DNA from: Oikopleura dioica
Taxonomy: Eukaryota; Animalia; Chordata
Length of the DNA: 64,000 nt
NCBI GenBank assembly: GCA_907165135.1
Contig: OU015568.1
Coordinates: 13,516,001-13,580,000 of the forward strand
Direction of reading: 5' to 3'
The notes under the pieces were generated by a model. It ran no database searches and was not told where the DNA came from. It saw only the letters and a program-made list of their open reading frames with translations. Positions 559-44,227 of the stretch are shown piece by piece. The translations under genes and the position numbers were made by a program. Each line of letters starts with the position of its first letter. Position 1 is the stretch's first letter.

Positions 559-3500
559 GTTAAAAACGAAACGTCCAGTGGAATGGTTTGGTTTTGCAAT
601 TCTTGCCGAAAAAAGCCGCCTTCTGGGGCTGGTCTGAGGTTAAACGACCAGGTCATTGAGAAGAAATCAACAAGAGTCCATGCAATGAATGTGGCAGAGA
701 CTCAGACGCTTCCAAGTCCGCTGAAAAGGCCAAGTCTAACGAGGCAAGATTCGGAAAGCATAGAAAAGCAAAACTTCAGGATTCCCAAGGAGTCCCATTC
801 GATGCCTAGATCAGGTACTTATTATGGAGGTTTCCCTATTAACTGCTTTCAGGTATTACCAGTCATTCGAGCAGCCACACGCCTGGAGACAATCCAAGCG
901 TGCGGAAGGCAAAGCGGTCACCTCCCCTTGGCGAGTTGGATTCTGGCATTGCGAGCTTATCAATCGAAGAGGGCAATCCAATCGACACCGGAACATATCA
1001 TCCAAACTCTGGCATGGAACACTATCCACACGATATGTCGCTGAACGAGCAAGACAGCAGTAAATCACGGACACTGCCCGAGCGATCCTCCAATGGCAAG
1101 GTTCGCCCTAGAAGACGGGTGCTTCCTCGCGACCCATCACAAGATAATGAAGGTCAACTGGGCCTTACATCACAGAAAAACTATAGAAGCCAGCCAGATT
1201 TGCTCGGACATAATCAACGGACGAAGGAATCACCTCTGGGCCAAAGAAAACGAGAAGCAGAAGATCCTTTCTTTGCTCACAACGAGAGCTGGTACAAGAG
1301 AAGTTTTGACATGTCAGATTGCGTTTCGGATACGTCGTCATATGGCGGTAAAAGGTAAGGAATCCGTTTGTTCCAATTTCTTATCATTGCTAGTAGGGAC
1401 CATGTGAGCCAATTCGAAATGGACTCCACCGCAGTGTTGATAAAACTCTGGTGGGAGAACTTGGCTGAAACAAGAGAAGGAGATGGTCGCCTAGTCTCAG
1501 CAGTAGAACGCGTATCGCAAGTCTATCAGCATCGAGGTCCTCCAGCTGTGCGCCTGTGTCTAGTCCACCCTGGAAAAGGCAGAGCTTCCAGAAGACGCAC
1601 CGTTGCTTCGGCAAATGAGGCTATTGAAACGAGAGACGGTGGATGGTGCTGGACAAGTCAGACTCCACCAATCGCCTGGGGGCCTTTGCCCAAACGAGCT
1701 CTTCAAAGGTATCGCCTCAAAAGTTGCCTCAGGGCTTAATTAATTCTTAGACTTGCGCTGGAGATAAGTCTATGCGATGACGAAAGAAATGTTCTCAGCA
1801 GAGCTCTAGTTGGATTACTGGACGTCAACTTTGACGCCAGGGCGAAGTGGTACAAGCTCTATCCTTGGTCCTCTAGGTAAGAGTCAATTCTTAGAGTACA
1901 GTTCCAGGGCCTCTTTCGGCCGGCCGCGTGGCCTAATGGATATGGCGTCTGACTTCGAATCAGGAAGTTGTGGGTTCGAGTCCCATCGTGGTCAAAACTT
2001 TTTTCCTTTTACATTTAACTTCCATCTCTCTTTACTTCATCGGGAAGAGAAAAAAGGGTTAAAATTTTTATACAGCTCATTGATGATTATATTAAGCCAC
2101 TCAATGAGCCGAGTAGACGATTACGAAAGACATAGAAGACCTCGCCGAAAACTGCCCCAACTTCCTCGAAACATCTCCAGTCTCTCGAATCAGAGCAGAG
2201 AACCAGCTTTTGCTGGACCTATGCGAACGCAATCAGTTACCGGTCACAAACTTTCACACTCAGTCTATTTCCGCGAACCAGGTGTAGTACAGTAGATATT
2301 CAGTGAGAAAGAAAAATACTTTTTATAGTATTTTTTAACACGATTTTCCTATTATTCCATTTTCCTTGACTTGTTTTCGTTTGAATATCTAAAATCAAGG
2401 ATTTCTACAAATCAGTCGATCTCCTCCTTGATTTCAATCAGTATTTTTCCGATCGGCATAATCAAATGATCATTTTGATGATGCTCATTTTTTACATCTT
2501 GTGACCAGATTTGAAGCTCTTGACGGTTCTCAAATCGTCACTGGGTCCAGCAGGCAACACGCCGACTCTGGAGCAGTGAATTTAAATTCCAAATCAGAGT
2601 CGAACAGTAGGCGGAATAATATGTCCCCCCTACAACCGCCCGGTCGGCTTCAAGGTACCACTCGACAATCATGTTCTTTAACCCTAAATTGCGTTGCCCA
2701 ATCAGCATCCAAAAGACAAATTCCAACATCAAGCTCCAGCTCAGTCGTTCAACAATCAAGCAACCCAAACCAGCAACTTCGAAGAGTGGCCGGAATTCCC
2801 TCGCACTCATCTCAGCCCGTATTACTGCCCTCAAACAGATTACTCAGGTTTGAATTTTCGCATCCAGAAGTAATGATATCATTTACTAGTCGCGAGCCAT
2901 CTCAAGATTCAAACAATGGAAGTTCAAACTCCGATCTTGAGCCCTCGCGAGTTCTGGCCGAGTTTGTTGGAGGTCTCGGACCCGGTCAGGTCGCCGGTCG
3001 TCAGGCTCTTGGAGCCGGGTCCCTGGGAGAGTTACACCTCACCATTCAGGTAACCCTTCCTTTTTCCTTGTTATTTTAATGCTTTTTTGTAGGAGCGACA
3101 GAATGCCTTTGTTGTAAATGTGAATCAAGCGCGTGCACTCAAATCCCCAAGGTACATGTCGATAGCTTTTAATTTCGAACTATAAAATCTTTAGAAATAC
3201 AAAAAGTCTTCCCGCTGCGTATGTAAAACTGTATCTGATGTTTGGCGCGCGACGCGTCGCCAAGCAAGGAATCCCAAAAGCTTCGAAAAGTCTGTCTCCA
3301 CAGTTTCACCAGGTCTGTCTGTTCGACCAGAATGAATCCTTCGACGCTCTCCAGGCGATTGTATGGGGCGATTACGGGCCACTCGATAAAAAGGCGTTCA
3401 TTGGAGTTGCTCAAATTCAGGTTGATCTCCTTTTCTTACTTTCAGATTTTCATGCTTTTCAGTTGAGTTCCTTGGATTACTCAAGCTCTTCGATTTCTGG

Positions 3501-3629
3501 TTGGTACAGATTGTTTCCCTCGTCGAGCATTGTTAATCCTTCTTTGTCAGGTATTTCAGCTCGTTCCTGTCGCATTTTTACGCTTGTTTAGGAACTGGTA
3601 GCCAGCTCTCAATCGACACAATTGGCTGA
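559..3629 (+). CDS. RIMS: RIM/UNC-10-like presynaptic active-zone protein (multi-exon; true start uncertain)
   Basis: Zn-finger remnant MVWFCNSCRK; degenerate C2A ending KWYKLYP; C2B with LPAAYVKLYL, LQAIVWGDYGPLDKKAFIGVAQI and GWYRLFPSSS, matching RIM C2B motifs; GT-AG introns e.g. 815-852, 1877-2075, 3551-3591; stop TGA 3627-3629. Confidence 0.85.
1922..1994 (+). tRNA. tRNA-Arg (anticodon UCG), intronic
   Basis: 73-nt cloverleaf: GGCCGCG/CGTGGTC acceptor stem, A-box TGGCCTAATGG, anticodon loop CTTCGAA, B-box GGTTCGAGTCC, followed by a T-run Pol III terminator. Confidence 0.95.
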
Positions 3630-4553
3630 TTAGCTACGACCCTGCTTCCCCGTCTTTCATAAAAAAAAAATTTCGGCATGCTCGCACAATCAAAGGACTT
3701 CTTTCTTGCTCAATCATCCGAATTCATTCATTTTTTTATTTTATTCTAAAGCATGAACTCCACCTTTATTCAAAGCCCCCTTTTATATTATTCCCCGTCG
3801 AATCTCTTCAGCATATGTATATTGGAAACGGTTTTATTTTCTTCATAAATAGTGCAACAAATTCTTCAAAAAATCTTTTACTTACCTATAAATTCTTGGT
3901 TCCCGCGCCTATTCTCGTTCATTTTCCGTAATATAACATGCGGCAAGCTCACAACTACGAGGCCATATTTATATAGATATAAAATATATCAAATAATATA
4001 TTGAATTTTATTGAAAATCCTTTGCTTTCACTACCTACCTATCTACCTAAAACAGTACCTAGCATGTTTCTGCCATTTCTTCCGTCAATTACCTGAAACT
4101 GTATATTACCGCTGCCATTTTACAGTACTTTCATTCAATGTTCTTCACAATATAGACCTAAATATCTTCAATTGACATTTTGAAATTGAAAGTCTGCCCA
4201 TAGTCGAATTTCAATTGAAATGCGAATATTTTATGCAGGATAAACACATTGAGGCGAATTTGATTTTTATTTTTATGATAATTTAGCGAGAACAGACAAA
4301 CACGCCTCGGATATATTCGAAGTGTCGTTATTTTCATCGTCAATGGCGTAGATTTGCCCTCTCAAGCTTCGTGGCCCGATTGATTTTCCTATTTTTTCCG
4401 AATTGATTTCACGAGGGACATTTCTACAGCACCCATTTTTATGATATTTTTCACTACTTTTTTTTCTTTTGTTGGTCTAAATTTGTTCATGCAGGTTAAT
4501 GGCATTCTCCGAAGTACGAAACTTCATCAATGAATGAAAGGTCGGCGACCTTT

Positions 4554-7500
4554 TTAATTGTAGTAGAAGCACAAGCCCTTGTCCATCTTGTTCCATTCTT
4601 TGATGAGTTTGGCGAGCTTGCCCTTCTTAGACTTGGTCTTGCCACCAGCAACTTCGACGAGCATATCGTTGTTAGCGAACTTCATCGACTTCATCTTGAG
4701 TCCGCTAAGAGCGCCTCGAATGCATTGAATCTTGTTATTGCTGATATCCAAAGTCTTGAGTTTCGTGTTAAATTTGAACATATCCGATGGAATGACTGTC
4801 CATCGACCATAGGAGGCATCAAGGGTGGTCAAGCCTGGGAGATAAGTCAGAATCGATTTGAGTGTTTCGATTGGAAGCGCTGGGTTTCCAGAAATGTCGA
4901 GCTGCTTGACATTCTTGCGCTGCTTCGGCGTCATAGCCATGATCAGTTTAACCAAGTTCTCGCCGGTATGCATGTTTCGCTTTGAGCAGCCAAGTGTCTT
5001 GCCCTTCTTGAGGGAGCAGGAGATATCCTTTGGCATGAAAACAGTTGAAGTCTCCGTGGTCGTCGTTGGCTCCGTTGTTGTCTCTGGAGCTGGTGTTGAC
5101 TGACCAGTAGGGTCGATAACAACGAATGGATCGCTAACAGGAGGGTCGGCAACTACTCCTATCGCTGAAGCTGGTGAAATGACCTGGAAGTTAAGTCCAA
5201 CATTTTCAGCAACTTGGTCAAAGATCAAATTGTAGAATGTGCAGTTGCCAAGGGCATCAAAGGCACACGTGGTATCACCAGAGAGCGAGAGAGTTCGCGT
5301 TCTCAGAACAGCGGTCGCGTTAACTGTCCATGGATCGGCAAGTAGACCAATTGGTCGCTCCATGCGGACACCTTGTCGGTAGGCGTGAAGAACAATTGGT
5401 GGGTAAACGGGCTCGCCAATGACGATCTCTGAATTTTTGAATGAGAAATATTTTTCAGAACCATTTTAGCTTACCTTCTGGGAAAGAAGCGATGGTGATA
5501 TTATCGGGCAGATCACTTGCAGTGTAAGTGATAACTTCAGCACCAGCAGCCAGTGCTTCTTCGATAACTTCTTGAGTATCAACGAATGTAGGCAAATCAT
5601 CAAGAGTCTGAAGAATTTCGATTAAAACTTGAAATTTAATTTCTGATTACCTCTCCAGTAAGATTAAATTGTGCGGCTTCAACTTCCTGAAGGGTAGCAT
5701 TTCCCTCGAGACCAAGAACAGTGGCAATGGTGTAATTCGACTCTGAAATTCAGTATTAATTGTTTGAATATTTTTCTTGGCTAACCGTTAGTCTCAGGAT
5801 CGAACCAAGATGGGGCTTCAGCATCCTTTTCGGGAATAGAAATACCAACAGACTCAGTTGTAGTGTTTGTAAGAGCATCAAGCTCACCAGTTGCGAGCTT
5901 TGCAAGGAGAGTATTACCGATTTCGATAGCCTCGAGTCGTTCGTCCGTAACTCGAACACCTGGGCAGTTAGGATTGCAAACACCTGAGCCAGCTTCGAGA
6001 AGAACTGTGAACATGTTTCCTGACTGTCGTCTTCGTCGATCGAATGTTGGGTTCTCGTATCGGTTGTATGGGGATCGTCGTCGTCGTTGTGGATCAGAGT
6101 CTTCGGCGATAACATTCATCATCTTGATCTTACTTTCGTGGATGCCAAGCATGACAGCAAGAAGACGTGGAAGCTCTGTGTGATCCCAGAACTCATCGAT
6201 AGTCAATTCCATAACAACGTCGAGTTCAAGAAGAATTGTATCCGAAATCTTGACGTCAACATATGTTCCTGGTTCCATGTTGAAGTAAACGACTTGTTCC
6301 ATTCGCTGGAAGTAGTTAGCGCCAGCAGGTTCGGTCAACTCAGGCTTCAAGTCATCGGTTGGGAAGTGCCATGCTTCACCACCATCTGGTGTGGTGTATT
6401 GCTGGTTGCTTCTCTGGTACTCGCCATTGAGATAAATCATCTGTCGATTCTGTCGGAAAGTAAAGAGCTCAATTCGAATCTTGCATTCAGCCTGTGGCAC
6501 GGACTTCGTTCCGAACATATGGAATCGAGTATGCTTTGGAAGAGTTCCAGAAGTATGGTATTGGTAAGTGTGACCACATTCAAGGTTGAAGAAATTCATT
6601 GTGACTCGGAGAAGACAAGCATAACCGAAGCAACAAGAAACGTCCATAACACCATTAGAAAGATCAATTCGCTTTCGCTCGTTATCGCGAAGACCGATAG
6701 GAGCAACTCGTCGAGTGGAAGAATCGTGGTCAAAAGACTCGAAACCAAGCTGAGCAAAGTTACCCATTGGACATTCGTAGCCGTCAGCATCTGGATTCCA
6801 TGTGCATTGATCGTTTCGGATTGTGCCCTTGAGAGGTGCGTATTCTGGGAATGGAATTCTATGCCCATCGAGGGTTGTAACCATTGTTTTTGGAATTCTG
6901 AAGTCACCAAGTCCACGTCGCTCGTCAGACTGTGGCCAGTCTTCGTTTCCTTCTAAGTCAGAAGTGCCCTGGTAGTAGTGAGGAGACTCTTCAACCCACT
7001 TCTCGTAGTGATACTCCGATTGTGCCATGATGTAGGTAGATGGCATACCGAGGAAGTCACCGGTAAGATCAACAAGCATGGATCGCTTGAGACCATCACA
7101 ATCCATGTCAACACAATCAGCAATGCTGATCCATCCAAGATTTGGTCTTGAGAACTGGTATCGATGGGTGGATGGGCCGTCAAAAGTAACGAACTGCAAC
7201 TCCATCATATGCTGATGTTCGGACCATCTGCTGCTCGTTCCGATGCCGTAGAAATCTCGGCCACATTTTTCTCCAAAGTTCATCAACTGGATATCCATGA
7301 AACAGGAACCTCCATAAAGAGAAGCATACGCTTCAGCAACACCAAGTGGCTTTCCGGGCCATTTCATGCCGCTGCTAGCAAACTGTGGAACCATGATACC
7401 GTAAGTACCCTGTGTTCGAGTACCAGGAGTGCGGGAGTTCTTAGTTTCCTTGTAATTTTGCGTTGCTTCACGAATGATGTAATCATTGCATGTTAATGTA

Positions 7501-31681: not shown

Positions 31682-34600
31682 ATGAGGTCGATATTCGCCC
31701 TTTTGGGCTTGGCGACCGCCTGCTCGAAGGACTCGGGGAGTCTCTTCGGCTGGACTGTCGACGATCTCGAAGTTGAAGTAGATAACCTCAAGACAAGAGC
31801 TGACTCTTCAGAAAACGATATCGCAGCTCTACGATCTACAGTTGACTCTCTTACGAAGAGAATCGAGGGAATCGAAGGATCACTCGCATGCCCAGGTTCG
31901 TTATTAGTAATAAGTTATTACTTATTTTGTAATAGGAACTTCTGTAAGTAAATCGAATTATTTTCTTTAGCTGGTTCAACTCTTGACACATGTAAATGCT
32001 CTGCTGGCTCTATCTCCCTCCCATGGGTTAACAACGGAGGATGCGTTGACGAATCCGCATATGTCTGCCAGCAAGAGAAGAAGAACTACAACAACTGGCG
32101 ACTCCCTCGAACTGCCGATGGCAAAGCTGTCACTCAGCCTTCCCATTACAATGTCAAGCTTCATCTTCCCGGTCTGTACGAAGAAGATAAAATTGATGGT
32201 GCGTTTCATTTTTCTGGCGAAACCGAAGTCCTTTTTACGGCAAATGAAGACATTTGTTTCTTCAGTTTGCATTTGGAATATAAGCTAGGGCTCTTTACTC
32301 ATAATTATAAGGCCATTTGATTTTTCTCATAGTTCTGTTTACATAGCCCTATGTGAAGCCAAAAGTGTCTAGGGTAATCTTAACTGTTGGCGGCGTTGAC
32401 GTCCCTGTCACATTTAATCTGAACGCGGAGTACCAATACCTGACAGTCTATTTGGATCACAAAATTACTGCCGGCTCTGAAGTGAGCGCGATTGTTCACT
32501 ACGAGAATGAAATTCCTACTGGAACTAAAGGTCTTTATTTGTCGCACTACACTAACCCCGCTGGACAGAAGCGATATCTCCTTGCAACGCAGTACGAGTC
32601 AACTGCTGCTCGAATGACATTCCCATGCTTCGATGAACCAGATCTCAAAGCCACCTTTGATTTTGAGATAAGCTACATGTACAAAGAATATACAGCAATC
32701 TTCAATATGGATCCAGCAGGACCACCAACACAAGTCGGGGACAGATACACCGTCAAATATCAGCGAACAATGAAGCTTCCGACGTATCTCCTTGCCATGC
32801 TCATTTCCGACTTCAATCTTGAATCTTCGGGCGTAAGCGCTGATGGAGTCAAAGTTCGAATTCTCGGTCGACCTGAGTGGGCAAATGAGACAAAATGGGC
32901 TTTGGAAGATACTCTCGCAGTCGTTGATGGTCTTTCCGAAAAATTCGGCTACAAGTATTGCGATTCTTTCCCAGGATCAGCTGGGGCTAACGGTAACTGC
33001 AAGTCGGATCAAGCCAGTATTCCTCAATTCGGTGCTGGTGCAATGGAAAACTGGGGTCTTATTACTTACAGAGAATATTACATGCATATTGATCAAGCTC
33101 GTGATCCCTTCCGAAGAAAGTACTACTCTACATCTATCATCGGTCACGAGCTCATCCATCAGTGGTTCGGTAATTTGGTAACATGCCCTTGGTGGGATGA
33201 AATTTACATCAACGAGGCTTTTGGGTCAATCGGTGGCTATCTTGGATTAATTTATTCGAAGAGCCACGAAAAGATCAACTACCAGTGGGAAGACGAGTAC
33301 TTGATCGATGAAGGTTACAGAGGCATGTACACTGACGGAACCGCTCTCTCCCGACCGATGGTGAATAATGTCAACAATGGCGAGCTCAAGGTTGAGACTC
33401 CCCAAGAGTGCTCCAATCAATTCGACAATATCGCCTATCCAAAATCTGGAAGCGTCATGCTCATGATTCGAGCTGTTCTTGGTGATGATCTCTGGACAGA
33501 AGGACTTCGAAACTACCTACAAATGATGAAATTCGATGTCTCCACTGGTGACAATCTTTTGACTTTCTGGGATGGCGTCGTTAATGATCAAGTGAAAGCA
33601 GAAAAACTCGGAGGAATGACTCCATCAGAGGCTTTCGAGCCGTTCTTCAAACAAATGGGCCTTCCGGCACTTAAGATTAACGAGTTCTACGACGAACTTG
33701 GAAACTTGAAAATCTCCGTGTCGTCGAGTCGTTATTTGAATACCAAACATAATAAACTCCACCCCTCAAGTTCGTTTAAATACATCTGGAATGTCCCGGT
33801 CGTATTTCGGGAGAATGGCGTCGACACCTTCCACTGGATCAAAGCTGGTGAAACGAACCAAGTTTACGAGTTCGATATCTCTGAAAATACAGTCATTGAC
33901 CCAGAGTCAAATATCTGGATGAGAATCAACTTCAACCAACAATACATCGACCGCGTTACCAACTTGACTGGAAAACGTCAAGCCAGATCAATTTCAAAAA
34001 TGATCCGTGATCACATGACTTTCCTGACCGAAGAAACTCGAGATGAGTATGATGTGGATCTTGAAAAAGTACTGTCTTTGCTTGCATTGATCGATCCTAC
34101 TGAAGAAGTTTCGGATAAGAAGATAAGATGGGGACAATGGGCTGAGCTCTCTCAATTAATGAACAGCAAAGTCTGGAATGTATTCATCGCTTACCTTTCA
34201 AATGTCGACGCGGGAACAGTCGAAGAAGATCTTTACAAGACTTTCACAGGTCATATTCAGAGCCTCGTCAGTTTCTGGAAGACAGATGGTCTCTATCCAG
34301 ATGTTCAACTTAACGATCCTGCTGAAGACAAATGGTATGGAGACTGGTCAAGACTCAACCAGTTCCTACTTCCTCTTGCACGTCGATTCGATTCCGCTGC
34401 TTTCGCCGTTGATGCTATTGATTATATAAGACCCGTGGTTTCTGGTTCTAATGACTTTATGGAGTTGTCCCCTGACTCAAGAGCTGATTCCTTCTATGCT
34501 GCCGTCCAAGCAGGCAATCAGGATACGATTCAATTTGCCCTTAATAAAATCAACGAAGCTGTTGACAATGGAATGGACATCAATTACATCAGATTGTGCA

Positions 34601-37600
34601 GAAGTACTGACAGCGCTAGCTCTGTATCCGTCGGCCTCTACACTGGCGACTGCCGAGAAAATGTTTACTTTATCGCGTTGAGTTTCTCAAAGGATATCAC
34701 AACTGTTGCTGATATCGCGTCAAAACTGCCCAAAGATCTCGTTGGATATTACTACATCAATGTTGCTGCGCGAGATGACATGGCAGTATCTGTTACTCGC
34801 CATATTCAGAGCCAGTCTGCAATGGACATTGAGAAAAATTGGGTTTCAGGTCAATTTACTAGCTTTGTCGAGACTTCTTGCAACTACTTTTCGACGATGG
34901 AGCACAGGCAACTTCTCCGAGAATGGTCGAACAAAGCATGGAACGCGGAGTTCCGAAGCAGCCTGTCAGCTTCGCTCACAATTTGCCAAAATACAATAAC
35001 AGCTAACGAAGAGCTAATGGATCTTCACTACGAATCATTTACAAGATTCTACTGCAAAATGGACACTCTGAGTTGTGGCGAAGACCTCGTTGGCTCTCCT
35101 TCCTCATATAACTCTTGGTATCTTCCCAAGAATTCAATGGGTGAATCTCACTACAAGCCTACCCAATACTACGTCGATTTGAATATTCGAAATTTGACAG
35201 ATGGCGCTCAAGAAGAAGGCAACTTCTACTACGATGGTACAAGCCAGGTTGAATTCACGAGCAGCGTAGCTCTCGATTCCATCCACATTCACGTGGACAA
35301 AGAGGAGCTCATGAAAATCACTGGATACGTTGTAAGAGCAAATGGAAAAGTCGTTCCCGTCCGAAAAACTGACCACAATTCTAACCGATTCCTTTTCTCA
35401 TTTTATTTGGATGCAACAATTCCTGCTGAAACACCCATTTCACTGATCATGAACTATAACGTCCAGCTTACTCCTGCTACCGAAGGCCTTTACCTCAGCA
35501 ATTACGAAGACAAAAACACTGGCGAAACACTCTATCTTCTTGCTACTCAGTTTGAATCTACTCATGCTAGAGAATGTTTCCCCTGCTTTGATGAGCCCCA
35601 GCTCAAGGCGCAATTCAAATTTTCGATTGAGTTTGACCTAGGCAAAAGACAAGATTACACTGCAATTTATAACATGGATGTTGAAAACAGCGTTGCTTTA
35701 CCTAATAATCGCCGGAGGAACTACTACTTTAATAGCATGCCAATGCCGACCTACTTGATCGCCATTCTTGTTAGCCCATTCAATACAGAGTCAAAAGGTA
35801 TTTCTCCAGGAATAAATGCCGGTGTTCGTATCCTTGGAAGACCAGAATGGAAGGATGATACAACATATGCACTAAATGAAGCCAAGAGTATAGTCGATAA
35901 TTTCTCAAATTATTTCGACTGGGACTATTGCCACGCTTTCAAAGAAAATCCTCAGAATGATGCTCTTGGAGAGCTTATCTGTAAAACAGATCAAACCGGA
36001 ATCCCGCAGTTCCGATCTGGTGCCATGGAGAACTGGGGTCTCATAACATACCGCGAGTACTATCTTCATTACAACCCTCAGCGAGACAACAATCTTGTAC
36101 GAAGAACCGTCACAAGAATCGTTGGCCACGAGCTCATCCACCAATGGTTTGGTAATCTCATTACTTGTAAATGGTGGGATGAGATTTACATCAATGAAGC
36201 TTGGGGATCGATTGGAGGATATCTCGGTCTTCAACAAGCTGAATCGAATGCTAATGTTGAATACGAATGGGAAGATGAATACCTAACGACCCAGGGATAC
36301 ACCGGTTTCACTTATGATGGCAGAAACACAAGCCGTCCAATGGTCAACAATGCCAACAACGGTCTTCTTAAAGTTGAAACACCTAATGAAATTAGCATTC
36401 AATTCGATAGTATTGCTTACAACAAAGCTGGTAGCGTCATGATGATGATCAGAGAAGTCATTGGCCAAGATAAATGGCAGAAAGGTCTCAGAAAATATCT
36501 GAAAGATAATCAATATACAAACCCAACTTGGAGAGAGCAGCTTCTTGCTTGGGATCAAGTTGTTCCAGATTTCAAAACGAATGCAATTTACGGCGAAAAT
36601 GATATCAACAAACCAGAAAATATCACAGAAGCTTTCAAGCCATATTTCTTACAAATGGGTTATCCTCTCTTGAAAATTGAGAAAAATACAGGAAACAAGT
36701 ACACAATCAAGCATTCTCGATTCATGAGTAATGAAGGAGACCTCTCTAAACCAGACAGTGACTTTGGCTACCAGTGGAACGTTCCGGTCATTTACACGAA
36801 TTCAGCAGGTGGTGATAGAAAAATTCAATGGATAAAAACAGCGTGTAAAGAAACCATTACAACTTTGACCCTCTTTGAAAACGCTATCATCGATCCCAAT
36901 GCTAATACATGGCTTCGAATCAAATTCTCTGATGCTATCCTCTCGTAAACACAACCAAAATTAACGTTCTTTATTTTATTTCAGTGACTATGCCAAAAAC
37001 GACCAAGTAAACAAGCGTCAAGCCGCAAAAATTGCCCAAGATGCTTACCAAATGGCTGTTTCGCCACGATACAACGGAGTCGTCAAATATGCAGATGTTA
37101 TGCAGGCAACAAAGCTTTTTGCCAAGTTCCCAGCTGAAAAGCAAAACTGGATCGTTTACCGAGAAATGACCTACTTGAATACTTTTGCTTCTCGCCTAGT
37201 TGCTGCAACAATGGACGAAGACTCAACTACCGGCCAGGCAGAATTCGCAGAGGCTTTTAGAAGCTACATGTTTGACCTGGCGAATAACAATGCTATCCAT
37301 GATCCATTAGACGATTACAACGTTAATGCAGAACGATGTTACCCTGATGAAGATGAAGGCCATGCCCGTGATGAGTCGAAGGTAAACTAAATTTATATAA
37401 TTGTAGCTTATTCGTTCTACATTTATAACGTGATTTTCTCAGGCACGAATGGCTCCATATGTAACGCAAACGCAACTCTACTACGCTCCAACTAGTGAAA
37501 CTTTCTTTGATCAAGCAGAACGACTGGCCAATAAGCTTGTTAATGGAGCACTTCCATTCTTGGAGCAATCTGCTGATACAAGACCGGACACTTTTATCGG

Positions 37601-42395: not shown

Positions 42396-44227
42396 CTAGT
42401 ACTTCTCTGGGAAGGAAGCAGCGGCAACTTGTTCCTCGATATCTTCGCCATTCTCTAGGGCCTGTTCCCATCGAATGATCTGGGCAACACCCTCGATGAA
42501 AATGTTTACCAGCTGGACTTCAGATTTTCCAAGTCGGTCGGCGTTGGAGATATCCCATGTGCCACCAGTAGAGGCAGAGTCAACTCCTGAAGAGCTTGTC
42601 ATAAACATTCATTGGCGCCCTTTCTTACCCTTAGTTCCTCGAACCTGGAGACCCATCTTCTTGCAAACATCCTTGAAATCCTTTCTGGCGGAGAAGAGTG
42701 GAACCTGAATTATTAATCAAACCGGCTCTTTTTTTACAAAAACATGATTTTTACCTTGACCATTGAACCAGCGCGGAGTCCAGTTCCCAAGTTAGAGGGG
42801 CAAGTCAAAATCCAGCCAAGATGCTCAGAGTGCATAAATTCAACGCCTTCTTCCTTGAGAACATCTTTGAGAGAAGATGTTATCTTTGCAAATCGACTGA
42901 AAGACAATTAGCGTTTTATAATCTTCTGGGAAGCTTACGAGATGATTTGCTTGACGTTATCGCCCTTTTCCATGGAGATGAGTCGGGTGTGATCTTCTTC
43001 GTTGATCCAGACGAAGACATTCTCATCGTTGTTGTGGAAAATACCTGAGTAATGGGAAATTGGATTTATGATTTTGAAATACCTCGAGCGTCAGGCCAGT
43101 GTCGGCCGCAACCAGAGCTAAGCAAAAGAGTTGAGTCAGGTTCCTGGAAGAGGTTTCCTCGCTCACGAAGGTATTCCTCCTTTTCGGCGGTCATTCCATT
43201 CGGCTTCTCGCCATAAGATCGAGAGCCAGCAAGGGGAAAGTAGTCGCCAGCAAGATCACCTTCGAGCTTCTTGAGACCCTTGACGACCAATCGTTCGATC
43301 TCCCGTCGTTCATCAAATGAGCAGCAAGGAGGGAGTCGGAATCCTCGAAGAGATCGTCCTGAAAATTATTGTCGTTGAGACTTCCACGCCCACTGGAAAA
43401 TTGAATTTTTTGTATATTTGCTAACCTGTTCGGCAGCGTGAAGTAAGAACGTATTTGCCAGTCGGATCGATCTTTGTATCACTATTAAAAATAGTTATTG
43501 ATGGTTAAATATCAATAAGAATACGATTCTAAGCGCTTATCATTTTTGAAAGAAAGCTCATTTTTCAAGAGAGAGAGCTAATAATAATATTTGATGAGCT
43601 TGGGATTCTAACTTGTCCTGGGTAGCTCTTATCTTTTCAAGAGACACTCTCTTCACTCGATAAAGAAGGCGAATAAATTTACTCACGAGATCTTGTCAAC
43701 GTCAAGGTCGGTGGGATGCTTAGCATCGGCCGCGTATCCATTGTGACGAGCGGAAATTACCGGGTCGAAGATTGGCTTGAAAAGCTCGAAAGACTCTTCA
43801 TCCCCAGCGACAAGGCCGCAAGTCTTGATCATAGGGTGGCCCTTGTTATCGATGCCAGTTTTGATGCAGTGGCCAATGTTGACTCCCAACTTGGTCGTCT
43901 TGTTTTTGAGCTCGTCGTACATGCCTGGATTCGCGCGCATTGCTTCGGCAAAGATGTTGCTAAAAAGGTACGAAATGGAACAATCGATCTGCGGCCGGCT
44001 TACTTATGTTCGGACAGGTCCGGGAGTTTGTCAGGCAGATTCTCAGCCAGAAAAGTGGCACCTTTCTCCTCGCAGTAGTATTCTTTGTCGCCGCATCCAG
44101 CTTGAATCCACTAAAATTTATATTTGATTATATTCTTCATTTATATTGGCAAGATATGAACAGCTATTCTTACCTCGGGGAGTTTCTTGACGCCCTCAGA
44201 AAGCGCAGTTGGTGGATAGTCTGCCAT
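42396..44227 (-). CDS. Phosphagen (creatine kinase-like ATP:guanido) kinase
   Basis: [91 protein letters not shown]; all introns GT-AG. Confidence 0.95.

Follow-up and report, generated by a model that had tools for sequence, protein, structure and literature searches.

The 64,000-nucleotide stretch of the Oikopleura dioica genome analysed here (assembly GCA_907165135.1, contig OU015568.1, positions 13,516,001 to 13,580,000; "the window", whose own numbering is used below) carries on its minus strand a complete gene for a phosphagen kinase, a candidate for acquisition from a protist. A sequence-only reading had proposed such a kinase at 42396-44227, and the gene, modelled by hand on the reverse complement of the window, fits this interval exactly, running from an ATG at 44227-44225 to a stop codon at 42398-42396. 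Its coding sequence of 1281 nt (426 codons) is spread over nine exons separated by eight GT-AG introns (63, 44, 205, 67, 38, 42, 50 and 42 nt, from the first to the eighth). As a control, a dynamic-programming spliced aligner guided by a homolog (P0284) gave the same protein and the same introns. A public O. dioica protein assigned to chromosome PAR (P0340, Oidioi.mRNA.OKI2018_I69.PAR.g12314.t1.cds), named 'creatine kinase' in UniRef, is 100% identical to the model over its 426 residues, and stood in for the model in whole-protein analyses such as the domain and structure searches. The protein segments quoted in the sequence-only reading are all present, GDKEYYCEE... in exon 2, EEDHTR in exon 6 and the others in exons 3 and 5.

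The gene was read beforehand as integrated in the host genome on account of its short introns, and several independent observations agree with this. Intron 1 (63 nt) is crossed precisely by one marine metatranscriptome contig, and O. dioica RNA-seq reads skip exactly 38 nt (intron 5) and 50 nt (intron 7). These O. dioica RNA runs match the gene at only 90-95% identity; because such reads stem from another lineage or from paralogs, the splice junctions alone were used, and RNA depth was not taken as a measure of expression. A second O. dioica assembly encodes a protein 95.5% identical to P0340 (P0326), a degree of conservation between divergent assemblies that suggests purifying selection, and the DNA runs of three studies (with two species labels) contain at least half of the sampled words of the stretch. 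The introns, the 17-Mb chromosome-scale contig, the two assemblies and the independent DNA runs show that the gene is physically integrated in the nuclear genome of O. dioica, and we take it to be expressed, on modest RNA evidence. Marine filter feeders do carry prey DNA, yet protist DNA contaminating the assembly would not be expected to have eight short host-type introns, to lie about 5.4 kb from a frame for an M1 aminopeptidase on such a contig, to recur in independent assemblies and runs, to have paralogs on four contigs, or to show a GC content at third codon positions (GC3) of 0.54, as against 0.66-0.85 in the transcripts of its protist relatives.

The phosphagen kinase domain pair is complete in P0340 (Pfam PF00217, 197.5 bits, and PF02807, 68.4 bits). 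Among solved structures the top matches are mitochondrial and brain creatine kinases (CK; 394 and 386 bits), with lombricine kinase (LK, 295 bits), glycocyamine kinase (GK, 289 bits) and arginine kinases (AK, at most 235 bits) scoring lower. An AlphaFold model built from a 37-sequence family alignment reaches a mean predicted local distance difference test score (pLDDT) of 93, and superposes on human CKB with a target-normalised TM-score of 0.91 at 49% identity; across the listed metazoan CK chains, including human CKB (3b6r) and the ubiquitous mitochondrial CK (uMtCK, 1qk1), the fold is the same, with scores of 0.89-0.91 and 46-51% identity. The NEED acidic cluster, the phosphate-binding arginines, NADRLG and the CP[ST]N[IL]GT signature are all present. 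The guanidino-specificity loop has the length found in CKs, lacks the deletion typical of AKs and keeps its isoleucine, and the C-terminal loop reads GVD, which preserves the equivalents of CK Val325 and Asp326. By alignment and structure matching, the protein is thus assigned to the dimeric CK group (CK, GK, LK) and not to the monomeric AK type. Since the Pfam domains, the structure matches, the predicted fold and the conserved catalytic residues all concur, it is likely a creatine-type phosphagen kinase. It would transfer phosphate reversibly between ATP and, most likely, creatine or a close guanidino analogue, thus buffering cellular ATP, presumably the same reaction as that of metazoan CKs, with which it shares the catalytic cysteine, the NEED cluster, the arginines, the full-length Ile loop and GVD.

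Three characters separate this protein from animal CKs. The first is the 10-residue insertion (residues 207-216), noted in the sequence-only reading and confirmed by alignment; it is missing in every canonical CK examined and found in the protist relatives, with a family consensus of xGSxSYxxKP. The second extends the N terminus by about 45 residues (YPPxGL...WIQxGCGDxEYxC in single-domain members); this extension is ordered in the predicted structure (pLDDT 84-95) and new relative to the solved CK-family chains matched. The third is a family motif: metazoan CKs have the signature DHFLFDKPVSPLL...ARDWPD and no insertion after YYPL, whereas in the Oikopleura gene the signature is replaced by a motif ending in ...GRHWPD, one of several family variants that follow ..LF.EPDS...G.WPDARG. 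None of the three is found in the animal CKs examined, including two ordinary CKs of Oikopleura itself. All three occur in single-domain proteins of the protist culture transcriptomes (MMETSP, EukProt), and multi-domain kinases of dinoflagellates (Symbiodinium natans, Polarella/Prorocentrum) have the insertion and a motif variant. Based on these characters, we place the gene in a distinct group of phosphagen kinases, here called insertion-type, which is not a curated family. EEDHTR, previously also taken as a protist mark, does not discriminate, as human uMtCK reads NEEDHTR and the closest relatives of the Oikopleura protein read EEDQMR or EEDHMR.

An exhaustive HMMER search with exon 5 returned 589 clusters, with multi-domain proteins and single-domain proteins matching 91 residues gap-free in the top ranks. 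Over the full length, three levels of identity can be distinguished: 71-77% for about 30 marine metatranscriptome proteins; 66-69% for P0211 (MMETSP and EukProt), P0034, P0175 and P0276 (EukProt), among which P0211 and P0276 share the extension as well; and 48-50% for the CKs of Styela, Molgula, corals, a sponge and fish, all of which lack the insertion. The first group is appendicularian, because P0284 is 93% identical to an O. dioica paralog (C1:5.37 Mb) and its members interleave with O. dioica paralogs in the tree described below; one of them lies on a low-GC metagenome contig (L037) and has two introns, of 65 and 78 nt. P0034 was recovered from five RNA runs belonging to a single accession series and from a Joint Genome Institute (JGI) sample. 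The 5' ends of its transcripts (L023-L028) consist of GCCATTCTGGC...AG or ...CAAG, immediately followed by one common 5' untranslated region. They are one mismatch away from the core of the dinoflagellate spliced leader, and resemble a full or relic spliced leader of that kind. The named relatives have three to four domains (Symbiodinium natans P0289, Polarella/Prorocentrum P0294 and S. microadriaticum P0304, 'creatine kinase, flagellar'), share HPMIKT-type specificity loops with the Oikopleura protein in addition to the insertion and motif variants, and are much more divergent than the single-domain relatives. An affinity to both dinoflagellate and haptophyte enzymes had been suspected; the named relatives outside Oikopleura are dinoflagellates, and no haptophyte sequence is among the named relatives listed. 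Occurrence in animals was judged from the named proteins among the best 120 matches of each listing. When a search was scored on the N-terminal 100 residues alone, 239 proteins matched, and the named ones among the best 120 were from O. dioica only; neither the extension nor the insertion was found in other named animals among the matches listed. CK-like transcripts have also been reported in foraminifera (PMC7490399).

The position of the gene was analysed in a tree of 80 rows and 413 columns, from which the insertion columns had been removed (IQ-TREE, LG+C20+F+G4 with PMSF; ultrafast bootstrap and SH-aLRT supports). Sponge, coral, fish and ascidian CKs form a canonical clade (100/100) together with the two ordinary CKs of O. 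dioica, the only genes of this species that group with ascidian or vertebrate CKs; as they are sister to the CK domains of Styela clava (100/97), the data recover tunicate relationships. The gene in the window falls outside the metazoan lineages (cytosolic, mitochondrial and flagellar), from which it differs by its extension, insertion and motif and by a cysteine in place of Val72. It belongs to an insertion-type clade (100/100) in which P0082 and P0210/P0273 are basal, followed by the dinoflagellate multi-domain proteins (100/100) and by a clade (96/100) uniting the sequence groups S4 (with the EukProt protein P0276), S5, S1, S2 and S3 (with the MMETSP protein P0211) and the appendicularians. 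The 20 appendicularian rows (100/100) lie inside the protist sequences, past branches supported at 95/89 and 96/100. Within them, the gene is a lone tip with a branch of 0.26, without an ortholog outside O. dioica in the sampled sequences. On this evidence it is not descended from the animal CK lineages; it is a lineage-specific paralog that different O. dioica lineages have conserved. Long branches are frequent among tunicate proteins, and a fast-evolving ordinary CK might have been drawn to the protists by long-branch attraction; this is unlikely because the appendicularian branches are short (0.12 for the stem, 0.26 for the tip), and the insertion and extension are discrete shared characters, the former kept out of the tree. 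Taken together with the evidence for integration given above, an artefact of either kind, contamination or attraction, appears extremely improbable.

The same tree bears on the possibility that an insertion-type kinase dates back to the last ancestor shared by animals and alveolates, and was inherited vertically and lost in all animals but the appendicularians. In the unrooted tree, the insertion-type and canonical sequences form two clades (100/100 each) that are sister to one another, so that their split could be old; P0082 has an intermediate motif, and appendicularians evolve fast and have an unusual gene content. Vertical descent, however, predicts that the appendicularians fall outside the protist clade, and a topology in which all 48 protist rows are confined to one side of a branch is worse by 39.4 log-likelihood units, the approximately unbiased (AU) test rejecting it (p = 0.0044). 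It would moreover demand many independent losses, while the nearest protist proteins are 66-69% identical and animal CKs only 48-50%, and O. dioica alone, among the named animals in the matches listed, has the extension or the insertion. We therefore regard this explanation as unlikely. Somewhat less likely still is a transfer in the opposite direction, with an appendicularian or other animal having supplied protists with the single-domain genes (S1-S4), or a series of transfers among protists and from protists to animals that blurs the picture. Dinoflagellates feed on other organisms and are known to have received foreign genes, and the polytomy formed by S1, S2, S3 and the appendicularians does not order these groups; yet the deeper insertion-type branches are all protist (the dinoflagellate multi-domain proteins, S4 with P0276, and P0210/P0273/P0082), and an animal source would itself lack an explained origin, no other animal carrier being among the matches listed.

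A Pfam scan of the whole O. dioica genome found nine phosphagen kinase loci, all of which were modelled with the spliced aligner. Two are the ordinary CKs (C1:13.08 Mb and C5:0.70 Mb), which belong to the same superfamily and also have short introns, but carry canonical motifs, have no insertion and are 40-49% identical per exon to the gene in the window (tblastn). The remaining seven are insertion-type genes with ten kinase domains in total: six have a single domain (the gene in the window and those at C2:0.85 Mb, C4:8.03 Mb, C1:5.32 Mb, C1:5.37 Mb and C1:3.27 Mb) and one has four. The paralogs are mostly 63-75% identical to the gene in the window (tblastn). The four contiguous domains of the multi-domain gene are each 65-73% identical to it and have few or no introns, the model of domain 4 containing one in-frame stop. 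As these domains cluster together and not with those of dinoflagellates, the fusion looks independent of the three- to four-domain dinoflagellate proteins, despite the parallel architecture. A phase-0 intron at about residue 358 is common to five paralogs, and another at about residue 235 to three; none of the eight intron positions of the gene in the window is common to any paralog (L005-L010) or to the canonical CKs. The horizontal transfer from a protist proposed in the sequence-only reading is thus supported, with a correction: given the seven-gene family, the transfer would have seeded a family, of which the gene examined here is a later paralog. A JGI metagenome contig of 6004 bp (L035) carries, at 670-5805, at least four tandem insertion-type domains, all with about 72% identity to the single-domain genes of O. 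dioica, and is probably a multi-domain gene of another appendicularian.

We propose, with a probability of roughly 75%, that an insertion-type kinase of a protist was transferred once, long ago, into an ancestor of the appendicularians, where it gained introns and was duplicated, and that it encodes a creatine-type enzyme. The donor would have been a relative of dinoflagellates or, failing that, of the cultured marine protists in S1-S4, and prey is a plausible source. Ocean transcriptomes contain orthologs of individual paralogs, so that the single transfer would be older than the divergence of several appendicularian lineages. Intron gain and duplication would then have led to the six single-domain genes, and a separate fusion to the four-domain gene. 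Compared with the nearest protist groups, the gene has no presequence and no Thr-rich linker, has eight short introns and a lower GC3, and lies on an animal chromosome; S1, the nearest non-appendicularian group, has presequences, Thr/Val-rich linkers and a GC3 of 0.76-0.85.

Several points weigh against this proposal. The tree contains no AK, GK or LK outgroup rows and is hence unrooted, so that the nesting of the appendicularians rests on the unrooted topology and on the AU test; the group for that test was chosen after a quick tree had been seen, whose 19-row basal group is the canonical CKs. The polytomy of S1, S2, S3 and the appendicularians (84/96) is drawn open. Most of the nearest neighbours (S1-S3) are metatranscriptome or culture-run sequences, from runs that include SRR13370232-351, SRR25907261/2, SRR18394841 and JGI 3300017152. 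They were recognised as protist from their MMETSP/EukProt source, presequences, high GC3 and a 5' end resembling a spliced leader rather than from names. The absence from other animals is likewise judged only on named proteins among the best 120 matches, and the unshared intron positions are weak evidence because Oikopleura introns turn over. As for the substrate, the creatine pocket of CK is formed by Ile69, Val72 and Val325; the equivalents of Ile69 and Val325 are kept, and that of Val72 is a cysteine in this copy (Cys101, 43818-43820) and in its ortholog P0326, but a valine in most paralogs and protist relatives; it could alter the substrate preference of this copy. Finally, the amidinotransferase superfamily that includes glycine amidinotransferase (AGAT; PF02274) has no match in the whole genome, a weak negative since the scan was made exon by exon; O. 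dioica may thus have no guanidinoacetate or creatine synthesis of its own, despite its nine phosphagen kinase loci.

No paper on Oikopleura phosphagen kinases, or on the transfer of a protist-type kinase into appendicularians, came up in a full-text literature search. Well-supported cases in which an animal received a gene from another eukaryote are rare and frequently contested. The enzyme kind is known, and we consider the gene a good candidate for such a transfer. The strengths of the case are the discrete characters (insertion and extension), the host's own CKs as an internal control, the statistical rejection of the vertical topology, and the history after the transfer, with intron gain, expansion to seven genes and a four-domain fusion. 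Tunicates have other foreign genes, the cellulose synthase and GH6 genes acquired horizontally from bacteria and common to tunicates generally (PMC7464555, PMC10334666), which were likewise fixed, intronised and retained under selection. Unlike these, the kinase would come from a eukaryotic protist, its recipients are apparently confined to the appendicularians, and the host already had a native homolog. 'Creatine kinase' is then not an invention of animals only, as an uncharacterised protist branch exists, and marine metatranscriptome reads of the insertion-type family could be assigned to the wrong kingdom. The findings also raise the question of which of the phosphagen systems supplies energy to the sperm and the constantly beating tail of Oikopleura. 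A broader scenario, which we favour only slightly over its negation, is that the donor was a dinoflagellate-like protist, plausibly eaten by the appendicularian ancestor, which built from the kinase a second, parallel phosphagen system of six single-domain genes and a four-domain enzyme resembling the flagellar-type multi-domain kinases of dinoflagellates, while its native CKs were cut to two; the foreign family may now account for a large part of the energy buffering in tail and sperm, with a substrate supply possibly independent of the animal's own creatine synthesis.

Table 1. Features of the O. dioica phosphagen kinase gene in window coordinates, with the four-domain paralog on contig C2.
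Feature	Position	Strand	Basis
Whole coding region, ATG to stop, 9 exons, 426 aa	42396..44227	minus	manual model and spliced aligner
Exon 1, residues 1-18, start of N-terminal extension	44174..44227	minus	manual model; intron 1 junction in RNA
Exon 2, remainder of N-terminal extension (no counterpart in canonical CKs), with the segment ...PDLSEH	44004..44110	minus	model, alignment
Exon 3, N-terminal domain PF02807	43687..43959	minus	Pfam, E = 1e-19; top PDB match mitochondrial CK
Guanidino-specificity loop, 12 residues, CK length, no AK-type deletion, Ile kept, Cys for Val72	43815..43850	minus	alignment
Exon 4	43426..43481	minus	manual model and spliced aligner
Exon 5, start of catalytic domain, carries insertion and family motif	43083..43358	minus	searches, alignment
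10-residue insertion after YFPL, residues 207-216	43201..43230	minus	alignment
Exon 6, NEEDHTR, substrate-binding acidic residues	42939..43044	minus	Pfam, structure matches; intron 5 junction in RNA
Exon 7	42755..42896	minus	Pfam
Active-site motif CPSNLGT (reactive cysteine)	42782..42802	minus	direct reading, alignment
Exon 8	42629..42704	minus	manual model; intron 7 junction in RNA
Exon 9 and stop codon, C-terminal flexible loop RGTKGVDSA	42396..42586	minus	model, Pfam, alignment
Four-domain insertion-type gene (loci L001-L004, L016, L019)	C2:10982246-10987643	minus	spliced aligner

Two further observations concern a basal relative and the neighbourhood of the gene. P0082 (477 aa, from one Logan run), basal in the insertion-type clade, combines a mitochondrial-type presequence and the insertion with a hybrid motif ending in ...ERDWPDARG, between the canonical and insertion types, and could inform on how the two CK branches separated. 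The M1 aminopeptidase frame, whose distance of about 5.4 kb is measured from the stop codon of the kinase gene, is an open frame of 1531 aa on the plus strand (32353-36948) with two sets of M1 aminopeptidase domains (PF17900 and PF01433), that is, a tandem-domain M1 peptidase.

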